Positions 3,030 through 62,501 of a stretch of 64,000 bases of DNA are shown in pieces (the first letter of the stretch is position 1; the number at the start of each line of letters is the position of its first letter). Made by a program: the position numbers and the translations under genes. The notes under the pieces are model-generated. The model saw only the letters and a list, made by a program, of their open reading frames with translations, searched no databases and was not told the DNA's origin. Location: positions 248,001 through 312,000 of IMG/VR virus record IMGVR_UViG_3300028558_000016; one strand, 5' to 3'.

Positions 3030-4700
3030 ATGGCAAATATTGATAAGATCACATCGAGCAGCACGGCAGAATACTTCTCAAAGAACCTTCAACAGGTGGG
3101 ATTCTCATCTCACACTAAAGCAGTTTTGACTGTTGTTAAGGAATCTGTAGATAATTCTCTTGATGCCTGCGAAGAAGCTGGAATACTTCCAAACATCAAC
3201 GTCATCATCGAAAAGATGGGACCTGGAACATTAACTGGTTCGGACCAAATTCGTGTTCGAGTGGAAGATAATGGTCCTGGAATAAATCAAGAAGACATTC
3301 AAAAAGTTTTCGGAGAATATCTTTCGTCATCCAAATTCGGAAGAGGTAGATGTTCGAGAGGGCAACAAGGTATAGGAATCTCTGCAGCAACCACATGGGC
3401 CCAATTGACTAATGCGATGGGCGTAAGAGTAATCACAAAAAGGAAAGAGAATAATAAAGCCATAAAATGCCTCGTTGAAGTTGACATCAAAAATAACAAG
3501 GGTGTTATCAAAGATAAGGAGTCAATAACATGGAATAAACCTCATGGCACTTGTGTTGAGTTTATATTTGACGGAAGAATACAAGCCAACGGAGAACTTG
3601 GTTTAATAAACTACCTAACAGGAACCGCACTTGTGAATCCACACATGTCCATGGATTATAAGATCTTTGGATTTGAACAGAAGGTTCTAACCCGAGTAAG
3701 CAATGACATGCCGGAAATTCCAGAGGCAGTCGAACCACATCCACACACTTTAAAACTTGGTGAATTCATAGCGCACTCACACATGTATGGGAAAACTAAA
3801 GTAGACCATTGGTTGAAAAAAGGTTTCTCCAGAATAAACGAAGGCACTCTTAAAGACATTGCTAAGCATGGAGGAAAGGGAATGATGACAAAACAAGTCG
3901 ATAGCTTAAATGATGTCGAACTTAAAACTCTATTTAAAGCAATACAAGATACAAAGCTAATGGCTCCGATGACAAAGAGCGTAATGTCGATTGGAGAGGA
4001 AGCATTTTCAAAAAGCATGAAGAGACTTGGAACAGTAAATTTCTTTTCCATAGTTTCAAGAACTCCTTGCGTATGTGATTTTAAACCAGTTCTTGTGGAA
4101 GTTGCAATTGCTCGTGTGTCAGATGGTGGACCTGAAGATTCATCCGCTCAAGTTCTAAGATTTGCAAACAGAGTTCCTCTTCAGTTTGATAAGTCGTCTT
4201 GCGCAATAGTCAAATCAATTGAGAGCGTAAATTGGAAAGCATACGGATTAAACCAACCAAAGAATTCTCTTCCATTAGGACCATACATCATAGCAGTTTC
4301 AGTTGTTTCTCCTTTCATCAAGTTTAAAAATGCTTCTAAAGAAACAATCGATGCATCAGATGAATTAGTGGAAGAAATAAGAAAAGCATTAATACAAGCA
4401 GGGCAGAGATTATCAAAACACATCAAACATGAGGATAAGGCAGCAGAGCTTGAAAAGAAGTTAAGACACATCGAACAGTTCTGTCCAATATTATTAAATG
4501 GATTGTGTCATATAACAAATGCTTCCAAGACAAGAAGAAATCAAGCAGAAAAAGGTCTTGCCAATCTTCTTGGAAGAGATGCAAAATCGACAAAGCTCGA
4601 ACTTGATCAAGCAACAAAAAGCTTAAACAAGGCTAAAGAAAAAGGAACCATCCAAAATAAAGAAAAAGGATTGGACGAAATAATGGATGATTTAATTTAA
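3030..4700 (+). CDS. top6B: DNA topoisomerase VI subunit B
   Basis: EYFSKNLQQVGF; GHKL motifs KESVDNSLDA, VEDNGPG, SSKF...RGQQGIGIS, HGT; transducer LRFANRVPL and FKNASKE. Confidence 0.93.
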   Translation: MANIDKITSSSTAEYFSKNLQQVGFSSHTKAVLTVVKESVDNSLDACEEAGILPNINVIIEKMGPGTLTGSDQIRVRVEDNGPGINQEDIQKVFGEYLSSSKFGRGRCSRGQQGIGISAATTWAQLTNAMGVRVITKRKENNKAIKCLVEVDIKNNKGVIKDKESITWNKPHGTCVEFIFDGRIQANGELGLINYLTGTALVNPHMSMDYKIFGFEQKVLTRVSNDMPEIPEAVEPHPHTLKLGEFIAHSHMYGKTKVDHWLKKGFSRINEGTLKDIAKHGGKGMMTKQVDSLNDVELKTLFKAIQDTKLMAPMTKSVMSIGEEAFSKSMKRLGTVNFFSIVSRTPCVCDFKPVLVEVAIARVSDGGPEDSSAQVLRFANRVPLQFDKSSCAIVKSIESVNWKAYGLNQPKNSLPLGPYIIAVSVVSPFIKFKNASKETIDASDELVEEIRKALIQAGQRLSKHIKHEDKAAELEKKLRHIEQFCPILLNGLCHITNASKTRRNQAEKGLANLLGRDAKSTKLELDQATKSLNKAKEKGTIQNKEKGLDEIMDDLI

Positions 4701-53853: not shown

Positions 53854-54291
53854 ATGCAAAAATTTGAACGAATAGAAATTTCTGAAGAAAGAGCCAAACA
53901 GCTTGGAACAGATGAGGTGTGGGTAAATGAAACTCATCAGGTAATTGTTTACAGAGATCCTAAAGAAGCTCCTGAGCTTCCACAAAATTCAAATCCAAAA
54001 GATTGGCCAGCGATGATTTGGCTATCAATAAAACGTGTTGACAGGGAAGCGATGCATGATTGGAGAGAACTACAGGAAATAAAGAACATGATCGTCGGCC
54101 CAGAAAACGAAGCAGTAGAAGTTTATCCTGCTGAATCAAGATTGGTTGACACTTCAAACCAATATCACCTGTGGGTTTTTGCTGACAAGGAAGTAAGATT
54201 TCCATTTGGATTTACTTCACGAGGTGTAGCTGATCCTGAACTTGCCGAAAAGATGGGTGCAAAACAAAGACCGTTTAATAAACATAACTAA
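53854..54291 (+). CDS. Conserved phage protein (DUF7694-like)
   Basis: WLSIKR.DR...HDWRELQEIKN...E.EAVEVYPAESRLVD..NQYHLW. Confidence 0.7.
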   Translation: MQKFERIEISEERAKQLGTDEVWVNETHQVIVYRDPKEAPELPQNSNPKDWPAMIWLSIKRVDREAMHDWRELQEIKNMIVGPENEAVEVYPAESRLVDTSNQYHLWVFADKEVRFPFGFTSRGVADPELAEKMGAKQRPFNKHN

Positions 54292-54927: not shown

Positions 54928-55248
54928 ATGGCAACACTACTGAAAGAAAAAACGAGGCACGTATTCATAAGTGCAATGAATTTTGTTAGAGTTAGATTAT
55001 TTGAAGGAACAGAATTAAATACGCCTGAGAAAAAAATCAGGGATGAAAAGGAAAAGGAAAAAGCTTTAGTTCATTATGAAAAGATCATGAAGAACATTGG
55101 TACATGTCAAAATAAATTGCAAATTGATACAGCTCATGTAATGATAGATCAATTTTATTCAAGATATGGAAGACTGTGCCATGATAAGTATTTGAACCTA
55201 CAAGAGAAGATGAATGAACGCAAAGACCAATTATGCATGTACTTTTAA
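54928..55248 (+). CDS. Hypothetical helical protein
   Basis: Isolated ORF with an upstream AT-rich gap. Confidence 0.55.
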   Translation: MATLLKEKTRHVFISAMNFVRVRLFEGTELNTPEKKIRDEKEKEKALVHYEKIMKNIGTCQNKLQIDTAHVMIDQFYSRYGRLCHDKYLNLQEKMNERKDQLCMYF

Positions 55249-55250
55249 TG

Positions 55251-55275
55251 TAACTGCTTGATTATCAATAAGTTA
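55251..55275. promoter_or_regulatory. 25-bp palindromic operator-like site, copy 3
   Basis: taact-gc-ttga-tta-tcaa-ta-agtta upstream of PARP; promoter-like ttagtaatttta at 55320. Confidence 0.6.
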
Positions 55276-55352
55276 TATTTCCATTATTTAATGGAAATAT
55301 TTTTATTTATGGCTAATTATTAGTAATTTTATAGTAAATAAATCAACCAAAT

Positions 55353-56801
55353 ATGGCAACAAAATCATCAACAATGTCCGGCGAGGACATTAAAAAAACA
55401 GCGATCGATAAAGGATTAAAGGTCGCAATACTCGTATGTGTGTCAGATGACAACAATAACAAGTATTTCAATATGTACGAACAAGGAGATGGAACTTACA
55501 TGGTAATCCGCGGAAGAGTGGACGTTACCGAAATAATCGAAGGTCCATACCCAATGTCAAAATGGGATGTTCATTACAAGGACAAAACAAAAGCAAACAA
55601 AAAACCAAAACCTTACACTGATCAAACTCATTTGTTCTCTGAACAAAAGAAAAGCGATGGTGCAGGAAAGAAAAAAGAAAAATCATCGAACTTCCATTCA
55701 AAGAGAACTGCAATGGTAATTGATTTCGTGAAACAACTTCAAAAATTCGCAAATCAATCGGTAGAAGAAAACTACACGGTATCAGCCGCAAACGTTACTA
55801 AGAAGCAAGTTGATTTCGCTCAACAAACTTTAAATCAAATTAGCGACATGGTTAAGAAAGGCGCAGAGGTTGGTCCAATCAATGACAAACTAATGGAGCT
55901 TTATCAAATCATTCCTCGTCGTATGAAACATGTGAATAACCACCTCATCATTACAGATGAAATGGAAAAAACACTTGGTAAAGTTGAGAAGACCGACAAA
56001 GAAAAAATGAAAGAGGCGAAAGCTAAAACATATTCAATGAAGATTAAATCTGATGCCGAGTTACAAAAAGCGCATGACATGATTGCCGGTGAGCAAGATA
56101 CTCTTGACGTTATGGCAGGTCAGGTTGCTGTTGAAGAACAGGAAAAGAAAGATCACGTTGAAACCCCAGGTGCTAAAAAAGAATACGATTTATTGCACGC
56201 AATGAAACTTGATATGGAAGATTGCGATAAGTATGAAATTGCAATGCTTAAGAATATGCTTGATCAAAACGCTAAAGCCGGCCACGAAAAGAATTCAAAC
56301 CTTTTCAAACGTGCATATCGCGTTAAGAACGATAGCACTGAAGTTGCTTACAACAATTTCATGGGTAAAGTTAAAAACAAGAAGAAGGAATTATTGTGGC
56401 ATGGAAGTCGCAATGAAAACTGGTGGAGCATTTTCCAACAAGGTTTAGTTCTTCGTCCTACCAATGCAGTAATCACCGGTAAGATGTTTGGTTACGGATT
56501 ATATTTCGCTGACAAGGCGCAAAAATCCATAAACTACTCTTCTTATTCTGGAGCATCACGCTCTTACACAGGGGGTTCATCAAGGAATGCAATTCTTGCG
56601 GTATATGAAGTTCACCAAGGAGATCAATTGGTAATTAAACGTCATGAGCACTCACACTCACAATTGACTGATAAACAAATGGAAAAACACGGTAAAGATT
56701 CTGTGTTCGCTCAAGGCGGTTATGACCTTGTGAATAACGAATACATTGTGTACAAGCAACAACAATGTACTATAAAATATCTTGTTGAAATTGGGAACTA
56801 A
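55353..56801 (+). CDS. Poly(ADP-ribose) polymerase-like protein (WGR-like, regulatory and catalytic domains)
   Basis: NNKYFNM...IRGRV; LMELYQIIPR; LLWHGSR, GKMFGYGLYFADKAQKSINY, NEYIVY (H-Y-E triad). Confidence 0.9.
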   Translation: MATKSSTMSGEDIKKTAIDKGLKVAILVCVSDDNNNKYFNMYEQGDGTYMVIRGRVDVTEIIEGPYPMSKWDVHYKDKTKANKKPKPYTDQTHLFSEQKKSDGAGKKKEKSSNFHSKRTAMVIDFVKQLQKFANQSVEENYTVSAANVTKKQVDFAQQTLNQISDMVKKGAEVGPINDKLMELYQIIPRRMKHVNNHLIITDEMEKTLGKVEKTDKEKMKEAKAKTYSMKIKSDAELQKAHDMIAGEQDTLDVMAGQVAVEEQEKKDHVETPGAKKEYDLLHAMKLDMEDCDKYEIAMLKNMLDQNAKAGHEKNSNLFKRAYRVKNDSTEVAYNNFMGKVKNKKKELLWHGSRNENWWSIFQQGLVLRPTNAVITGKMFGYGLYFADKAQKSINYSSYSGASRSYTGGSSRNAILAVYEVHQGDQLVIKRHEHSHSQLTDKQMEKHGKDSVFAQGGYDLVNNEYIVYKQQQCTIKYLVEIGN

Positions 56802-57217
56802 TGGAAGAAAACAAAAACGATATAGAAGAAATCGACGGTGTCCAAGAAGAGAGGGGTGAATTCCCTCCCTTCTTTGGCTTGTTTAGAATGACAAGATTTG
56901 AACGTGTACTTCATGCTTCCATCATTGGATTAATTGGAGCAGCATTCATCGCATACACTCTGTGGAGCAAAATCATTCCAGGACAAAACCCAACTAAGGA
57001 AATGCTACAGATGAATGATTGGTATGTTATACCATGTTTCGTATTATCTGTTTTGCTTCTGTTGTCTGGATTTCCAGTTGTAATGAAAGACAGAAGTTTT
57101 GGAAACATGATGCTTCAACAATTGCTTAGATGCTTCATGGCGATAATATGGATGGTCTTATATTTTGAAGCAAGTCAAATATTATTCATAATTTTTTACA
57201 GACACTTACCAGCATGA
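56801..57217 (+). CDS. Three-TM membrane protein
   Basis: Three hydrophobic helices; TAATG-coupled to PARP. Confidence 0.6.
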   Translation: MEENKNDIEEIDGVQEERGEFPPFFGLFRMTRFERVLHASIIGLIGAAFIAYTLWSKIIPGQNPTKEMLQMNDWYVIPCFVLSVLLLLSGFPVVMKDRSFGNMMLQQLLRCFMAIIWMVLYFEASQILFIIFYRHLPA

Positions 57218-57714
57218 GTAAAGAAAAACATAATCATAAGGAAGGCTTTGAATGTGAAGCTTGCAAAATTGGAATGAAAGCAATGAAAGAAAAAGAAGCT
57301 GGATTCCTAAAAAATCCAGGTTGGTTCGCTCATTATGTTCCAGATCCTACATATCCAAATGGAATGAATGTGCACACCCACGGTCTTGAAGAAAATTTCA
57401 AGCATCTTGATTTGCAAATATGTCTTGCTATGGATCAACGTATATGCCATCAAATTTTAAACAATGCCATTGGAGAAATAAAGGCAGGAAAGAAATTTGA
57501 GGCCGGAGAAAAATACGATGATGTCATTGAAGCAAGTCCAGCATACAAAGACCTTAAACTAAAGGTTCTTTTCCTTGAAGCCGAGGAAGGTGGAAGAAAA
57601 GTTCTTCGCATGATTTTTCCTGAAAAAGATGGAAGTTTTATGGGGCAAATGTCATCCAAACAAATGGAAGGTTGTAAGGTTCCAGAGGATTTAATCTTAT
57701 ATTATACGTTATGA
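57214..57714 (+). CDS. DUF4262-like protein
   Basis: GWFAHYV...NVHTHGL...HLDLQI. Confidence 0.55.
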   Translation: MSKEKHNHKEGFECEACKIGMKAMKEKEAGFLKNPGWFAHYVPDPTYPNGMNVHTHGLEENFKHLDLQICLAMDQRICHQILNNAIGEIKAGKKFEAGEKYDDVIEASPAYKDLKLKVLFLEAEEGGRKVLRMIFPEKDGSFMGQMSSKQMEGCKVPEDLILYYTL

Positions 57715-57944
57715 ATTCACACCTATTGATGACAGAAACTTCCAACATAGATTGGAAAGAAAACAGAGTTATTGACAATGATAAGCTTGAAAAAACGGTT
57801 ATTCCATGGGAAGATAACATTGAGGTAACCAATGGTCTTGATGGAGAAAAGAAGACAATTAAGATGAAAACTGTGTCTTTATATGAACATATTATGTTAA
57901 AAGATGGAAAAAAATACAAAATATTGCACATGTTATCAAAATAA
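57711..57944 (+). CDS. Hypothetical protein
   Basis: ATGA-coupled. Confidence 0.5.
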   Translation: MNSHLLMTETSNIDWKENRVIDNDKLEKTVIPWEDNIEVTNGLDGEKKTIKMKTVSLYEHIMLKDGKKYKILHMLSK

Positions 57945-58008
57945 TGTGTAATTTAGCACTATAATTAAAATTAAAATAATAATATAAACAACAAAAAAAG
58001 AAACAATT

Positions 58009-58830
58009 ATGAGTACAACAGCCACAAAAAAAATCGACAAGGATGCTGTTTTTAAAACAGCAGTTAAATTAATGACTGACAATGGAAAAACTTCTTCATT
58101 GGAAGTAAAAGAAGAATTACGTAAAGATGGGTATTGGGCAAAACAAGAACCCGTTCGTGATTTGCTTCGCGAATTAAAAAGTGAACACAATTGGAACGTG
58201 AATGATGTTGGTCACATTGAATATTCTCTTCCAACAGCAACATCCGCAGCAACAACCGGTCCTTCTCCAATTGAAGGTGACATCATCGATTTAATCGTTG
58301 AGACAACCAACATTGACGAAGATGATGTTGAAACTACAAGCATTCTTACTACAGATCTTTCAATGGACCATCTTGATATTATTTCATTGCAAATGGCCAT
58401 CGACAAAAAATTCAGTGTTGACTCTTCTAAAGATTGGAACAATATCAACACCGTTGACGATGTTATTAAGTTGGTGGAAAAGCTTACAGCCGGAACTCCT
58501 TTTGCGAAAGCTCCAACTACTTCTTTACATTCAGTTATGAATCCAAAAACAACTGGAAAACCAAGAAAACCAAAAATGGTTATTAATGATTCTCAAAATC
58601 CATCAACGGATCCTCGTGTTACAATCAACATTGATTACAAGAAGATTGTTACAGGCACGAAAGATGCCAAAGACACATGTGATGGAAAAGACTGGTATGT
58701 TTCTAACAAAGGAACTGATCCGGTAATTTATGATCAAAAATACAATTCCAACAACGTGAGAACCGTATATGCTCGTTTGAAAGGAATTAAGATACAGGAA
58801 GTTCGCGCAGCTCGCGTTGAACATCTATAG
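58009..58830 (+). CDS. Three-domain protein with a central acyl-carrier-protein domain lacking the phosphopantetheine Ser
   Basis: aa 88-160 align with ACP (IIDLIVE...DLSMDHLDIISLQMAIDKKFSV...INTVDDVI); DSL is DHL. Confidence 0.8.
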   Translation: MSTTATKKIDKDAVFKTAVKLMTDNGKTSSLEVKEELRKDGYWAKQEPVRDLLRELKSEHNWNVNDVGHIEYSLPTATSAATTGPSPIEGDIIDLIVETTNIDEDDVETTSILTTDLSMDHLDIISLQMAIDKKFSVDSSKDWNNINTVDDVIKLVEKLTAGTPFAKAPTTSLHSVMNPKTTGKPRKPKMVINDSQNPSTDPRVTINIDYKKIVTGTKDAKDTCDGKDWYVSNKGTDPVIYDQKYNSNNVRTVYARLKGIKIQEVRAARVEHL

Positions 58831-58884
58831 GAAAACGGTAAACCCATGGTTGCCATGGTTGGTTGTCCTTTGGGTATTATCGTG

Positions 58885-58913
58885 AAAGGGTGGGAGGAAA
58901 CTTCCACCCTTTT
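58885..58913 (+). terminator. Intrinsic terminator
   Basis: aaagggtgg...gaaa...ccacccttt. Confidence 0.75.
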
Positions 58914-58963
58914 AATTTTCCATGACTTTAAGAAGTATATAGCTTTAAATAACCAACACAGTC

Positions 58964-59113
58964 ATGGCCAAAGCAAAAGCAGCCTCCACCAACTCAGTAA
59001 GGGCTTTAAACAGTTCAAAGAAGAACAGACCCGGAGTTCATTCCAAAAAGAAGAATTCAAGTCTTAAATCATCTAAAAACTATAAAAAGGCATATAGAGG
59101 ACAGGGTAGATGA
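58964..59113 (+). CDS. 49-aa highly basic peptide ending YRGQGR (not in the ORF track)
   Basis: MAKAKAASTNSVRALNSSKKNRPGVHSKKKNSSLKSSKNYKKAYRGQGR; preceded by gtatata. Confidence 0.7.
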   Translation: MAKAKAASTNSVRALNSSKKNRPGVHSKKKNSSLKSSKNYKKAYRGQGR

Positions 59114-59230
59114 AACATTGTTTTGAGATTAGGGTATAGCTTTAGAAGGTTGCATCCAGCAAAAACAACTATCGTCTATGGCTTCGGCCTTCGATGATCC
59201 TACGACCTAAGCAATCTGTGTTAGTTTCAT
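59110..59230 (+). ncRNA. Candidate structured RNA downstream of the basic peptide
   Basis: Nested stems atgaaac/gtttcat, agatt/aatct, ttagg/cctaa, atcgtc/gatgat, ggc-TTCG-gcc. Confidence 0.35.
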
Positions 59231-59259
59231 TTGTTTTATTTTTATTAAAAGTGTAAGAG

Positions 59260-59290
59260 TCCAGGCCCCGTAAGGCCTGGATTTCTTATT
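59260..59290 (+). terminator. Intrinsic terminator
   Basis: tccaggcc-ccgtaa-ggcctgga followed by a T-rich run. Confidence 0.75.
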
Positions 59291-59308
59291 TTTCTTATAA
59301 GTAGATTA

Positions 59309-59320
59309 TTGGTATATTTG
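59309..59320 (+). promoter_or_regulatory. Bacteroidota-type -7 promoter element
   Basis: ttggtatatttg, ending 7 nt before the ATG. Confidence 0.55.
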
Positions 59321-59327
59321 CATTATA

Positions 59328-60485
59328 ATGCAGATACCTAAAGACATAGCAGAAATTCAACAAAAATTCATCGCCGCTGGAAAAGAAATTTTCCTCGTTG
59401 GTGGATGTGTTCGTGATTTCAAGCTTGGTCTTGAGCCCAAAGATTTGGACATGGCAACCAATGCCTTTCCAGAAGAAATTGAAACCATCCTCAAAGGAGT
59501 TGAGATGGACCTTACAGGCAAAAGTTTTGGAGTCATGCGGGTTCGCAGTGAGTTCGATCCAAACGGATACGAAATTGCCACATACAGAGAAGATGAGAGT
59601 GCTGGAAGAAAACCGACCGTAAAGATCGGATCAACCATGGAAAACGATGCGTGGAGAAGAGACTTCACGATCAACGCTCTTTACTATGATATTTCCAACA
59701 AGACTATAATTGATCACACTGGCGGGCTCAATGATTTAGAAAACAAAATCATTCGTGCTTGTGGCGATCCTGCGAAAAGAATTAACGATGATGCTTTGAG
59801 AATGCTTAGGGCAGTTCGTTTCAAAAATACTATTGGTGGAACTATTGATGTTGACTTGCATAATGCAATGTTGGCCAATCCTGTTTTACAAGGTCCAGAC
59901 AAAGATGGAAATATAGTACCAATATCACAGGAGAGAATAGCTGAGGAATTCCTTAAAGGTCTTTCCAAAAGCTACAACATGGATCTCGTTGACCAATATG
60001 TGAAAGATTTAATGACATACCAATTTCTTGGACAAGTGTTCAGAGGACTTCACGTAAATGATAATTTTACATGCAACTCAAGAAAGCCTGAGATAATGAT
60101 TGCGGATCTTTTACGTTTTAATACGAATCACAAGGATTTATTTAATAAGCTTGTTTATGATTGCAAATTCAGTATTGATATTGCCGAAGGAGTTATTTTT
60201 CTTTTGAGCCTTGAAGATATTGATGAGGACAAAGTGTACAAGCTAAGAAAAAGAATGGACAGCAAAACCAAATTAAATAAGGATGATCTTATTATTTATT
60301 CAGGTTTAATGGTAGAGAATGGAATGATTGGAAGAGTTGCTTATGTACATGCATTCACTAAATATTCCATAACAACAAGCGGAGATGAATTAAAAGAAAA
60401 GGAAGGATTTGTTGATGGAGCAGAACTTGGAGCAGAGATAGCAAAAAGAGAGAAAAACAATTTTTTAAAAATATTTACACAATGA
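59328..60485 (+). CDS. cca: Class II CCA-adding tRNA nucleotidyltransferase / poly(A) polymerase family
   Basis: VGGCVRD...KDLDMAT; EIATYR; DAWRRDFTINAL; DDALRMLRAVRF; ERI..E. Confidence 0.85.
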   Translation: MQIPKDIAEIQQKFIAAGKEIFLVGGCVRDFKLGLEPKDLDMATNAFPEEIETILKGVEMDLTGKSFGVMRVRSEFDPNGYEIATYREDESAGRKPTVKIGSTMENDAWRRDFTINALYYDISNKTIIDHTGGLNDLENKIIRACGDPAKRINDDALRMLRAVRFKNTIGGTIDVDLHNAMLANPVLQGPDKDGNIVPISQERIAEEFLKGLSKSYNMDLVDQYVKDLMTYQFLGQVFRGLHVNDNFTCNSRKPEIMIADLLRFNTNHKDLFNKLVYDCKFSIDIAEGVIFLLSLEDIDEDKVYKLRKRMDSKTKLNKDDLIIYSGLMVENGMIGRVAYVHAFTKYSITTSGDELKEKEGFVDGAELGAEIAKREKNNFLKIFTQ

Positions 60486-61174
60486 ACGAATCAAAAGACT
60501 TAAAAAGTTTAATAGCATCCTTGCAGGAAGGAAGCGAGTTTTGTGATTTCATGATAACAAAGCTTCTTCACATGGATGGGTCCACCGATGCCGATCTTAA
60601 AAAAGATTACAGAAAACTCTTTAAAGAAGGAGGAGCTGATGCTTTTAAAGATGACATGAAAAATGGAAAGAAATTAAAGTATACAGAAGAAGAGCTTGAA
60701 ATGATCGAGGAAAAAATAAATGAAATTTTTCCAGAAGGTCATGAGCCACTCACAACAACAATGATACCATTCGGTTTTTATCTTGGACAATTATTAAGAA
60801 AGAAGATACCAGGTGCTGAATGGAAAGTGACAGATGAGGTTAACAAGAAAAACAGTATATGGGATGTCTTTATTGAATTTAAAAATTCTGACGGATATAC
60901 CATGCAGGCTAAACCGTTCATGCGCGTTGATAAATTTTGGAGAAGGAGAGAAGATAAGATGTCAGCATTCGTTAAGATGATTGAAATGACATCTGAAATT
61001 AAAATGGATCCTGAGTATTGGAATAAACGCGCAGATGATGAAGGTTGGATTGAAACCGCTAACGAAATGTCGTTCAGGGTTTTTCAAGGAAGCAAGAAAG
61101 ATAAAATAGATGGAGATTTCTCTAAAGCAAAGGGAATGTTTCATAACGGAAAATTTGGAGATGGAAAATATTAA
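60482..61174 (+). CDS. Hypothetical protein (weakly DUF3806-like)
   Basis: FGFYLGQLL...GAEW motif; ATGA-coupled. Confidence 0.5.
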   Translation: MNESKDLKSLIASLQEGSEFCDFMITKLLHMDGSTDADLKKDYRKLFKEGGADAFKDDMKNGKKLKYTEEELEMIEEKINEIFPEGHEPLTTTMIPFGFYLGQLLRKKIPGAEWKVTDEVNKKNSIWDVFIEFKNSDGYTMQAKPFMRVDKFWRRREDKMSAFVKMIEMTSEIKMDPEYWNKRADDEGWIETANEMSFRVFQGSKKDKIDGDFSKAKGMFHNGKFGDGKY

Positions 61175-62501
61175 TAAAATAAAAGACATACACTCGAGTG
61201 ATGCCTATGGAATTCTGGTAGAGACTGGATGTGGTCTTGCGGTATCTAATGAATTGCTTGAAGTCAGCGGTGCATCTAATACGGTTTATTTTGCTGAATG
61301 TCCATACAGCAAGGAATATCAAACATTCAAGTATGGCGAAACCAATGCGAGAGCGGTTTCAATGGAAAACATAAAGCACATAATGAATTATCATAAAGCT
61401 TTAGATAAACCAGAAAACGTTAACTTCATTTATGCTTCATCCTTTCAAGTAGGAGAACACAACGATAAATCAACTCATGGATGGATAGGTCTTTCATTAA
61501 AAGAAGATGACAGACGTTATTTCCACATCTCAATACATGAGTCATTAACACGAAAACAATACATCGATAAAATATCTAAGATAGGAATTGACATTTTACA
61601 TTTTTACATAAACAAATCAACTGGTACAAATTTCATACCGAGCAATTGTTGCATTGACATAGTACTTAATGGAAAAGGTGAACAGGTCAATTTAACTGAT
61701 ATGTTTGTTTCTCTTAGATATGAAGACGATGAAAACTTCTTATGCTTCAAAGAAGGAAAATTAGTTAGAATGGAAGATCTTTTCAGAGATCAAAAGAACA
61801 TAGTATTATTCAAGGGAAGCTTTAATCCAATCCATGCCGCTCACATACACACTGCACAATTAGCAAAGGATGAATATGGAATTGAACCTGTGTTTGTTAT
61901 TAGTTCTTCAGTGTATCAAAAAGGATGGATAGAACCTGAGGATCTTAAGAACCGAGTGGAAACATTAAACGAACTTGGCTATCCTGTTATAATAACTAAA
62001 GATGGTTACTTTAACAAGAACACGTCCTATATTAGACGTAAATTCAAACAACCTTTGATATACGTAGTTGGTTCGGATACATTAAACAGAATATTGGAAA
62101 GCTCATATAACATTTTAAATCCAGAACTTAGCGAGAGATATAATCATTACGTCAATCAATTGATTTCCATGAAGCCTGAGAATGAACTGATAACAGACGA
62201 AGAATTGGATGAAATAGAAAAAATGGCATTACAACATTATTTAAGAAGATTCAAAGAGGATTTCAAAGATGTAAAATTCTTCGTTGTAAATAGACCAGGG
62301 AGCGAATTGCACGAAGATGCAAAACGAATAGAAGAATTTTATTCAATGGTTGAAGAACATCCTGAGTATTTCCATATAAGCTCAACTAAAATTCGTGCCA
62401 TGCTTATAGCTGGAGATTATGAGACAATTAAAAAATTGATACCAGAAAAAATATTTGAAAAGTATATTAACCAAAAAACAAACAACCATGTCAACAACTA
62501 A
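61161..62501 (+). CDS. CinA-like domain fused to an NMNAT-like (HxGH-class) nucleotidyltransferase
   Basis: N-terminal ETGCG...LL.VSGASNTV...PYS; C-terminal FKGSFNPIHAAH, VVGSDT..R, F.V..R, ISSTKIR. Confidence 0.75.
   Translation: MENINKIKDIHSSDAYGILVETGCGLAVSNELLEVSGASNTVYFAECPYSKEYQTFKYGETNARAVSMENIKHIMNYHKALDKPENVNFIYASSFQVGEHNDKSTHGWIGLSLKEDDRRYFHISIHESLTRKQYIDKISKIGIDILHFYINKSTGTNFIPSNCCIDIVLNGKGEQVNLTDMFVSLRYEDDENFLCFKEGKLVRMEDLFRDQKNIVLFKGSFNPIHAAHIHTAQLAKDEYGIEPVFVISSSVYQKGWIEPEDLKNRVETLNELGYPVIITKDGYFNKNTSYIRRKFKQPLIYVVGSDTLNRILESSYNILNPELSERYNHYVNQLISMKPENELITDEELDEIEKMALQHYLRRFKEDFKDVKFFVVNRPGSELHEDAKRIEEFYSMVEEHPEYFHISSTKIRAMLIAGDYETIKKLIPEKIFEKYINQKTNNHVNN

Follow-up and report, generated by a model that had tools for sequence, protein, structure and literature searches.

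A Serine-Less Acyl Carrier Protein Fold between a Winged Helix and a Basic Domain in a Soil Phage Gene That Ends a PARP-Led Gene Run

Introduction

Acyl carrier proteins (ACPs) of type II fatty-acid synthesis (FAS), such as AcpP (PF00550, TIGR00517), hold phosphopantetheine on the serine of a D-S-L-D motif, and AcpS and the Fab enzymes recognise them through the acidic residues of helix II. The present analysis concerns a phage gene whose product contains a domain of this fold in which the serine is missing. The gene lies at 58009..58830 on the + strand of a 64,000-nucleotide stretch of DNA (hereafter the window; positions 248,001 to 312,000 of the IMG/VR record IMGVR_UViG_3300028558_000016), which belongs to a 482-kb phage genome from soil, and it is an intact open reading frame (ORF) for a protein of 273 amino acids (aa) with three domains. 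The middle domain resembles the type II FAS ACPs in its helical-bundle fold, its length of about 75 aa and its strong acidity, keeps the D-x-L-D at the start of helix II, and is 35–38% identical to Plasmodium ACP. It differs from them in carrying histidine for serine, in lacking E41, E48 and E49, in having a new tryptophan before helix IV, in scoring below the curated cut-offs, and in being embedded between unrelated domains and not free-standing.

ACP-like folds without the serine are not new as such, since DUF1493 (PF07377) and the mitochondrial ribosomal protein mL50 (PF10501), which we take to be clan members that lack it, apparently reuse the fold without a prosthetic group, as the window domain does; they differ in showing no specific relationship to it, the window domain being far closer to true FAS ACPs. 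Phage-borne homologs are also represented by the stand-alone phage ACPs (PHROG 5934 and 4154), which are annotated as ordinary single-domain proteins and are unfused to a winged helix and a C-terminal domain. ACP modules have been reported in Flavobacterium jumbo phages (PMC13573597). The neighbourhood of the window gene is shared by the cultured, 146-kb Cellulophaga phage phi4:1, in which the hypothetical protein gp030 (154 aa), with a winged helix homologous to the N-terminal domain of the window protein (hhalign probability 96%), is encoded 17 nucleotides (nt) after gp031, a poly(ADP-ribose) polymerase (PARP), and next to gp032, a tRNA nucleotidyltransferase; gp030 differs in having no ACP-like insert and no detectable C-terminal domain. 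Surveys of phage genomes have recorded PARPs (PMC7824862). The searchable literature on ACPs without the serine, on mimics of ACP in phages and on partners of phage PARPs yielded no description of the present family, of a serine-less phage ACP, or of a partner or target of a phage PARP.

From the evidence given below we infer, with a probability of about one half, that the ACP-like domain does not act as a carrier but serves a PARP-associated, nucleic-acid-binding factor as an acidic module for protein interaction.

An ACP Fold without the Attachment Serine

The gene and the parts of its product are as follows.

58009..58830, + strand: gene for the winged helix, the serine-less ACP fold and the basic C-terminal domain (ORF; 15 full-length homologs of 36–81% identity; ratio of nonsynonymous to synonymous substitution rates, dN/dS, of 0.13 for the whole gene)
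58024..58236, + strand: N-terminal winged-helix domain, aa 6–76 (AlphaFold2, AF2, order H-H-H-E-E, predicted local distance difference test, pLDDT, ~85; PHROG 33401)
58237..58266, + strand: linker 1, aa 77–86, T/A/S/P-rich and disordered (pLDDT <50; dN/dS ~1 at deeper divergence)
58267..58491, + strand: serine-less ACP-fold domain, aa 87–161 (homology, fold, charge, dN/dS and helix II changes)
58369..58371, + strand: codon CAT of His121, at the phosphopantetheine-serine position of ACPs (sequence; alignment to D-S-L-D of Plasmodium ACP)
58492..58578, + strand: linker 2, aa 162–190, T/A/P-rich and then basic (net +6), disordered (pLDDT 30–40)
58579..58827, + strand: basic alpha/beta C-terminal domain, aa 191–273 (pLDDT ~83; dN/dS 0.07–0.09)

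Direct reading of residues 116–123 gives D-L-S-M-D-H-L-D, with His121 in the slot of the serine. The likeness to ACPs far exceeds chance. Searching all PDB chains with phmmer matched the window protein to Plasmodium ACP 3gzl (E = 1.6e-8), and because TKDLGADSLDLVELIMALEEKF aligns to TTDLSMDHLDIISLQMAIDKKF of 3gzl, His121 stands opposite the carrier serine. NCBIfam ACP models match the middle domain at up to E = 8.6e-12, and its best family match is PHROG 5934, 'acyl carrier protein' (E = 1e-10). The AF2 model of the 273-aa protein, which was built on 15 homologs, shows three separately folded parts joined by linkers of low confidence, with aa 87–160 forming three long helices at a pLDDT of about 70. 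When this model was compared with the PDB by Foldseek, all of the top 50 matches were ACPs, the best being again 3gzl (template-modelling score by target 0.88, root-mean-square deviation 1.9 Å, 35% identity), so that AF2 and Foldseek agree on an ACP-type helical bundle. The net charge is 0 for the N-terminal part, –13 for the ACP-like domain (isoelectric point 4.05), +6 for the second linker and +3 for the C-terminal domain.

Despite this fold, all of the curated ACP cut-offs are missed by the domain, which scores 16.4 against 20.8 bits on Pfam PP-binding (PF00550), 40.9 against 70.45 bits on TIGR00517 and 44.7 against 71 bits on NF002148; DUF1493 (PF07377) likewise stays below its gathering threshold (16.1 bits versus 21, E = 0.018). 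The attachment serine of D-S-L is found in 0 of 19 domains of the clade to which the window protein belongs. The domain is therefore described here as an ACP-fold domain that is unable to take phosphopantetheine at the canonical site.

Much of this had been read from the letters of the sequence beforehand. The original prediction held that aa 88–160 (58270–58488) follow the ACP pattern, which the homology matches and the AF2 fold bear out; that D-S-L-D reads D-H-L-D through CAT at 58369–58371, as direct reading confirms; that no serine codon is one substitution away from CAT, which is correct; and that the domain lies between two non-ACP domains with T/A/P linkers, in agreement with linker pLDDT values below 50. 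The doubt that it might not model as an ACP bundle at all, checked by hidden Markov models (HMMs) and structure against PP-binding, falls away because the 50 Foldseek matches are ACPs without exception.

Conservation and Selection of the Serine-Less State

Contigs of four other rhizosphere metagenome runs span the His121 codon with no differences, and a sequencing error at this codon is ruled out by their identical bases. A search of 5.8 billion proteins gave 15 full-length relatives of 36–100% identity, in the alignment of which the former serine site is occupied by histidine in 11, by asparagine in two (the closest relatives), by aspartate in two and by serine in none. The 19 clade domains comprise this set together with members from a search of 1.84 billion representatives, considered among the best 150 of the 618 proteins with E ≤ 1e-10 (a number that includes unrelated multi-ACP synthases), and they hold histidine in 14, aspartate in three, asparagine in two and serine in none. 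At the codon level, CAT is also present in the related loci L001, L003 and L007, and AAT or AAC (asparagine) in L005 and L006. More distant members carry proline, threonine or glutamate at the same site. Aspartate, asparagine, threonine and serine are good helix N-cap residues, and the occurrence of histidine, asparagine, aspartate, threonine and glutamate here is also as expected of a helix N-cap freed from a chemical role.

The dN/dS ratios were calculated by the Nei–Gojobori method for the window gene against its two closest relatives and amounted to 0.10–0.14 for the N-terminal domain, 0.14–0.22 for the ACP-like domain and 0.08–0.09 for the C-terminal domain, whereas those of the linkers approach 1 (neutral) in more distant comparisons. 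The ACP-like domain is therefore kept by selection, as its ratio of 0.14–0.22 stands against linkers of about 1. A decaying singleton, the refutation that the original prediction had itself named, is ruled out by the serine-less homologs and the purifying selection, serine never being kept in the homolog alignment.

Megablast of 55000–62000 against GenBank phages gave no match, and tblastn of the 273-aa protein against phages gave as its sole match the N-terminal domain in LR756500. In the related-locus search made for the close-homolog alignment, IMG/VR returned only the contig of the window itself and the GTDB genomes returned none, while the JGI metagenomes provided four loci, all of them already in the set.

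The ACP Domain as an Optional Insert

When HMMs of the single domains were run on all matches of up to 450 aa, the core of the family proved to be the N-terminal winged helix plus the C-terminal domain. The N-domain HMM matches the window protein at E = 2e-37 and about 90 other proteins at 1e-11 to 1e-40, and the C-domain HMM matches the window protein at E = 3e-49, with the motif W...TRDxVRxAYA...DxRAxR present. Dozens of members of 130–210 aa have both end domains and no ACP, the two being joined by a short spacer, in many cases rich in Ser/Thr or made of poly-Asp/Glu. The spacer occurs with no ACP, with a serine-less ACP, with a serine-less and a canonical ACP, with a canonical ACP alone, or with a disabled ACP. 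In P0008, P0016 and P0017 a canonical D-S-L-D ACP comes directly after the serine-less one; a canonical ACP is the only insert in P0057 and P0070 and is N-terminal in P0083; and these extra or sole ACPs that keep D-S-L-D score above the Pfam threshold, at 43–59 bits. Both groups share the winged helix, the C-terminal domain, the insert position and the PARP neighbourhood with the window protein, from which they differ in carrying a D-S-L-D ACP, the window protein having the serine-less copy only. Because this position is still occupied by a normal ACP in sister genes, the family allows a comparison of how the carrier function was gained, duplicated and lost.

In a quick maximum-likelihood tree of the N- and C-terminal domains the serine-less clade groups together (21 rows; Shimodaira–Hasegawa-like approximate likelihood-ratio test, SH-aLRT, 86), the histidine group is nested within it (16 rows, SH-aLRT 92) and the aspartate forms lie near its base; the tree is weakly supported and does not show in which sequence the second ACP was gained and lost. 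The net charge of the spacer is –10 in the window protein and averages –9.5 in members with an ACP and –4.4 in members without one, so that it is net acidic in each case. The tethered, permanently apo state claimed by the original prediction holds in part, in that the domain has no canonical phosphopantetheine site and sits between two domains; that the insert is optional had been overlooked.

Several further proteins of the family were noticed. P0023 (370 aa) reads D-L-G-A-D-E-L-D within aa 188–272, with glutamate in place of serine, and still reaches 48 bits on Pfam PP-binding; within this family, the carrier serine seems to have been lost here independently and not long ago. A stand-alone C-terminal domain (87 aa, E = 5.5e-10 to the C-domain profile) is encoded at 3173–3436 of L009, just upstream of the true-ACP member P0057, and P0143 (63 aa) is another protein consisting of this domain only. 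Source databases call P0007, P0009, P0012, P0013, P0017 and P0023 'acyl carrier protein'; the first four are without the attachment serine, P0023 has glutamate at the site, and P0017 has a canonical D-S-L-D ACP beside its serine-less copy. As such names sit on serine-less proteins, this misannotation is likely to spread, and annotators are warned that the label is attached to proteins whose canonical site can hold no acyl group.

Remodelling of Helix II

Helix II positions, in E. coli AcpP numbering, were compared between the 19 serine-less domains and 12 serine-bearing ACP domains of the same match set. The serine-bearing domains retain E41 in 11/12, M44 in 11/12, E47 in 12/12 and E49 in 10/12, whereas in the serine-less clade position 41 is glutamine, serine, alanine, lysine or threonine (acidic in 0/19), E49 has become lysine in 15/19 and residue 44 is variable. 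Only E47 persists, as aspartate in 16/19; the acidic positions E41, E48 and E49 are lost, and with them the acidic recognition surface formed by E41, E47, E48 and E49. A new tryptophan ahead of helix IV, W143 in the window protein, is present in 16 of the 19. Remodelling of such consistency looks like a changed partner.

The original prediction had proposed a decoy, a permanently apo ACP that would sequester ACP partners such as AcpS, FAS enzymes, SpoT, IscS and MukB, an account extended here to the Lpx enzymes. A mimic should retain the helix II surface, and because this is here consistently remodelled, mimicry of host ACP is doubtful. The decoy gained no specific support, on this ground and because a normal D-S-L-D ACP adjoins the pseudo-ACP in some orthologues, a misfit with a permanently apo design. 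It is further at odds with scores far under the ACP family cut-offs, with an insert that most family members do without, and with a context of ADP-ribosylation and NAD genes, not lipid genes. These points make the decoy unlikely even with a true, strongly acidic ACP fold in which the equivalents of D35 and L37 are invariant and that of D38 is mostly retained, with serine absent throughout the clade, and with a preprint that predicts contact between an ordinary phage ACP and host FabZ, by which the targeting of ACP partners has already been proposed. Bacteroidota are not known to encode MukB, which makes it an unlikely target if the host belongs to this phylum.

The N- and C-Terminal Domains

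The two-domain relative P0021 was modelled at a pLDDT of 87, with its domains at about 97. By Foldseek against the PDB, its N-terminal part matches winged-helix DNA-binding domains, such as those of BlaI (1p6r), Zur, MecI, the centromere-binding AspA and Zalpha. By sequence, the N-terminal domain equals PHROG 33401, a family of no assigned function, and apart from this neither Pfam nor PHROGs gave a credible match to the N- or C-terminal domain. RpoE, the delta subunit of Firmicutes RNA polymerase, consists of a HARE-HTH winged helix and a long acidic tail, and the window protein is like it in that a winged helix is followed by a strongly acidic region; an ESM-Atlas cluster named 'HTH HARE-type' lies near the N-terminal domain with a score of 0.81, which is taken as a lead only. 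The likeness is limited by the absence of delta-subunit structures from the top Foldseek matches and by the basic C-terminal domain and folded acidic ACP that the window family adds, and Pfam HARE-HTH gave no match in ten family members.

The C-terminal domain is the most conserved part of the protein and is basic. Invariant among the close homologs are W229, D242, K244, Y245, R251, Y254, R256, R266 and R269, of which R251 and R266 (R69 and R84 when aa 183–273 are numbered on their own) are invariant in 53 sequences. A profile of these 53 domains had no matches among PDB sequences at E ≤ 10, Pfam gave no credible or recurrent match in the 53 members, ESM-Atlas returned for this domain only unnamed viral clusters with structural template-modelling scores below 0.5, BFVD returned only uncharacterised viral proteins, and in the Foldseek search of the PDB with the two-domain model all 50 listed matches fell on the N-terminal part and none on the C-terminal domain.

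Genomic Neighbourhood and the PARP Link

Upstream of the gene, and just behind it, the following features were annotated.

55353..56801, + strand: PARP, catalytic domain at aa 294–480 (Pfam PARP, E = 4.6e-26)
56801..57944, + strand: three overlapping small genes, of 138 aa, of 166 aa (DUF4262, E = 5.8e-12) and of 77 aa
58883..58914, + strand: terminator-like hairpin with a 14-bp stem and a T tail, 53 nt past the stop codon (terminator scan)

The PARP gene is the first of a same-strand run that ends with 58009..58830, a membership that the original prediction had missed. The PARP, the 138-aa, the DUF4262 and the 77-aa genes overlap at start and stop by 1, 4 and 4 nt, and a gap of 64 nt precedes 58009; the three small genes stand in the same order in L003, L005, L006 and L016. 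The hairpin is the probable end of the transcription unit, terminator-like sites numbering 8 against 2.6 expected from shuffles. The PARP is a full-length homolog of gp031 of Cellulophaga phage phi4:1 (E = 4e-40), and its N-terminus is WGR-like in our reading of the gp031 alignment, Pfam finding no WGR in aa 1–293. Downstream in the window follow a 49-aa basic peptide, a CCA-adding enzyme and a gene like nicotinamide or nicotinic acid mononucleotide (NMN/NaMN) adenylyltransferases, to which the island of the relatives adds UVR, NUDIX and NAMPT genes. The conserved island spans 55353–62501 and occurs also in L001, L003, L007 and L016; it looks, from its gene content, like a counter-defence block of NAD+ salvage and tRNA repair.

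PARP genes recur beside the family in differing arrangements. A PARP lies 0–3 genes away in L001, L003, L005, L007 and L016, and probably in L006 too, where a gene of 450 aa takes its place. In L014 the PARP gene immediately precedes that of a true-ACP member, in L009 a WGR-PARP lies at 2 kb, and in L016 an ACP-less member follows PARP and DUF4262. In the uncultured phage genome LR756500 (462 kb), a two-domain member has a Macro-domain gene directly downstream and a PARP 9.4 kb upstream. A PARP neighbourhood is thus present in the window clade, L009, L014, L016, phi4:1 and LR756500. Among 50,697 GenBank phage records a PARP match was found in 16, and all eight records that hold the family are among these 16, the eight representing only two lineages. 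The family is a concrete candidate for a PARP companion, with examples ranging from the 146-kb genome of a Cellulophaga phage to genomes above 460 kb.

On this neighbourhood rests a further explanation, in which the acidic spacer including the ACP-like domain would be a dedicated substrate of the PARP, comparable to an automodification domain provided in trans, modification would switch nucleic-acid binding, and position 121 would perhaps be the acceptor. PARP or Macro genes adjoin the family in several arrangements, the spacer is rich in aspartate and glutamate family-wide, with poly-Asp tracts in ACP-less members, and histidine, asparagine and aspartate can all accept ADP-ribose in other systems. 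The support comes from genomic context only, however; proline, threonine or glutamate at the site in distant members speaks against a conserved acceptor residue, aspartate, asparagine, threonine and serine are also plain helix N-cap residues, and no ADP-ribose-binding fold was detected in the C-terminal domain. We rate this account as rather improbable.

Discussion

A non-carrier, acidic interaction module in a PARP-associated factor is the interpretation that we prefer. According to it, the ACP-like domain would no longer carry acyl groups and would not imitate host ACP towards fatty-acid enzymes; its part would be that of a folded, strongly acidic module for interaction or regulation within a nucleic-acid-binding factor. 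The latter would work with the phage WGR-PARP as its partner, its targeting subunit or its substrate, roles between which the sequence cannot tell, in an island of NAD+ salvage and tRNA repair that would probably counter host defence. A bolder version, which is unlikely as a whole, holds that the family is a dedicated partner of phage WGR-PARPs, either a targeting subunit or an in-trans substrate switched by ADP-ribosylation, and that the ACP fold of the clade, once captured, lost its cofactor site and became an acidic acceptor or docking module.

Several observations weigh against the preferred interpretation. The AF2 confidence of the ACP-like domain is only about 70, and that E41, E47 and E48 matter for ACP partners is taken from the ACP literature. 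Histidine in 14 of 19 domains exceeds what a pure helix cap requires, and because of this the site may serve some new chemistry. The winged-helix matches of P0021 have Foldseek probabilities of about 1 but weak E-values (E ≥ 0.014), and the C-terminal domain is without any informative match. The link to PARP is drawn from gene neighbourhood in a small number of phage lineages, some of them related to one another: no family member was found within 6–10 kb of the PARP loci of Klebsiella, Stenotrophomonas and Xanthomonas phages and of LR756511, and L015 has no PARP nearby, with ART-PolyVal and NAD-salvage genes instead. The proteins just downstream of PARP in the Klebsiella, Stenotrophomonas and Xanthomonas phages were also considered as hidden winged-helix members and rejected for lack of similarity, as was the 481-aa protein upstream in L015 as a hidden PARP.

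Selection bears on a third alternative, an inert relic of a former carrier that would now be a spacer without a function of its own. The dN/dS of 0.14–0.22 is far under that of the near-neutral linkers, the fold is retained down to 36% protein identity, and residues specific to the clade are conserved (tryptophan in 16/19, lysine at E49 in 15/19 and histidine in 14/19), which leaves a relic very unlikely, although the insert is absent from most members, the spacer varies widely in length and sequence, and the ACP-like domain evolves faster than the N- and C-terminal domains. That the domain has kept a carrier role, with some transferase of phage or host modifying a non-canonical residue such as His121 or Ser118 (three residues ahead of the site in D-L-S-M-D-H-L-D), is scarcely credible in spite of the serine-bearing ACP inserts of relatives, since Ser118 occurs only in the window protein and is glycine in the other 14 close homologs, we know of no transferase for histidine, and there is no ACP-related enzyme in the neighbourhood and no second ACP in the window.

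With the serine-less ACP, nature offers a clear-cut example of a cofactor-carrier fold put to use without the cofactor. Any host or phage protein that the domain may bind would expose a new interaction surface of the ACP fold. The importance of the family would rise if the PARP connection proves functional. Should the bolder version hold, its ACP fold would be the first carrier-protein fold found recruited to an ADP-ribosylation system, and the family would give a first handle on the role of phage PARPs.

Other Features of the Loci

An Rfam scan of 57600–59400 found nothing above threshold, and a sigma-70 promoter scan stayed at chance level. Further upstream in the window, a DUF7694 protein is encoded at 53854–54291 (E = 3.8e-17) and keeps its place upstream in the island of L003 and L005.

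The very basic 49-aa peptide is encoded at 58964–59113 on the + strand, between the hairpins 58883–58914 and 59257–59284, and reads ..KKxRPGVHSKKK..SKNYKKxYRGQGR; Pfam and NCBIfam gave no match to it. It is conserved in L001, L005, L007 and L016, with 23 invariant positions in five sequences, and it could be a partner of the acidic protein.

In LR756500 (L011, 4138–9285), the two-domain member is preceded by a gene like the major vault protein (827 aa, MVP shoulder and Vault_3), and a vault protein beside ADP-ribose genes recalls the eukaryotic vault PARP. Nearby lie a CoaB/DFP (phosphopantothenoylcysteine synthetase) gene, an RNA ligase gene and an HD+AAA_33 gene. In two proteobacterial jumbo phages, Stenotrophomonas phage RAS14 (L018, 8037–8417) and Xanthomonas phage Xoo-sp13 (L019, 7356–7724), a gene annotated as acyl-CoA thioesterase lies 3 genes downstream of the PARP, which may be a coincidence or a second, independent hint of acyl/CoA genes near phage PARPs.

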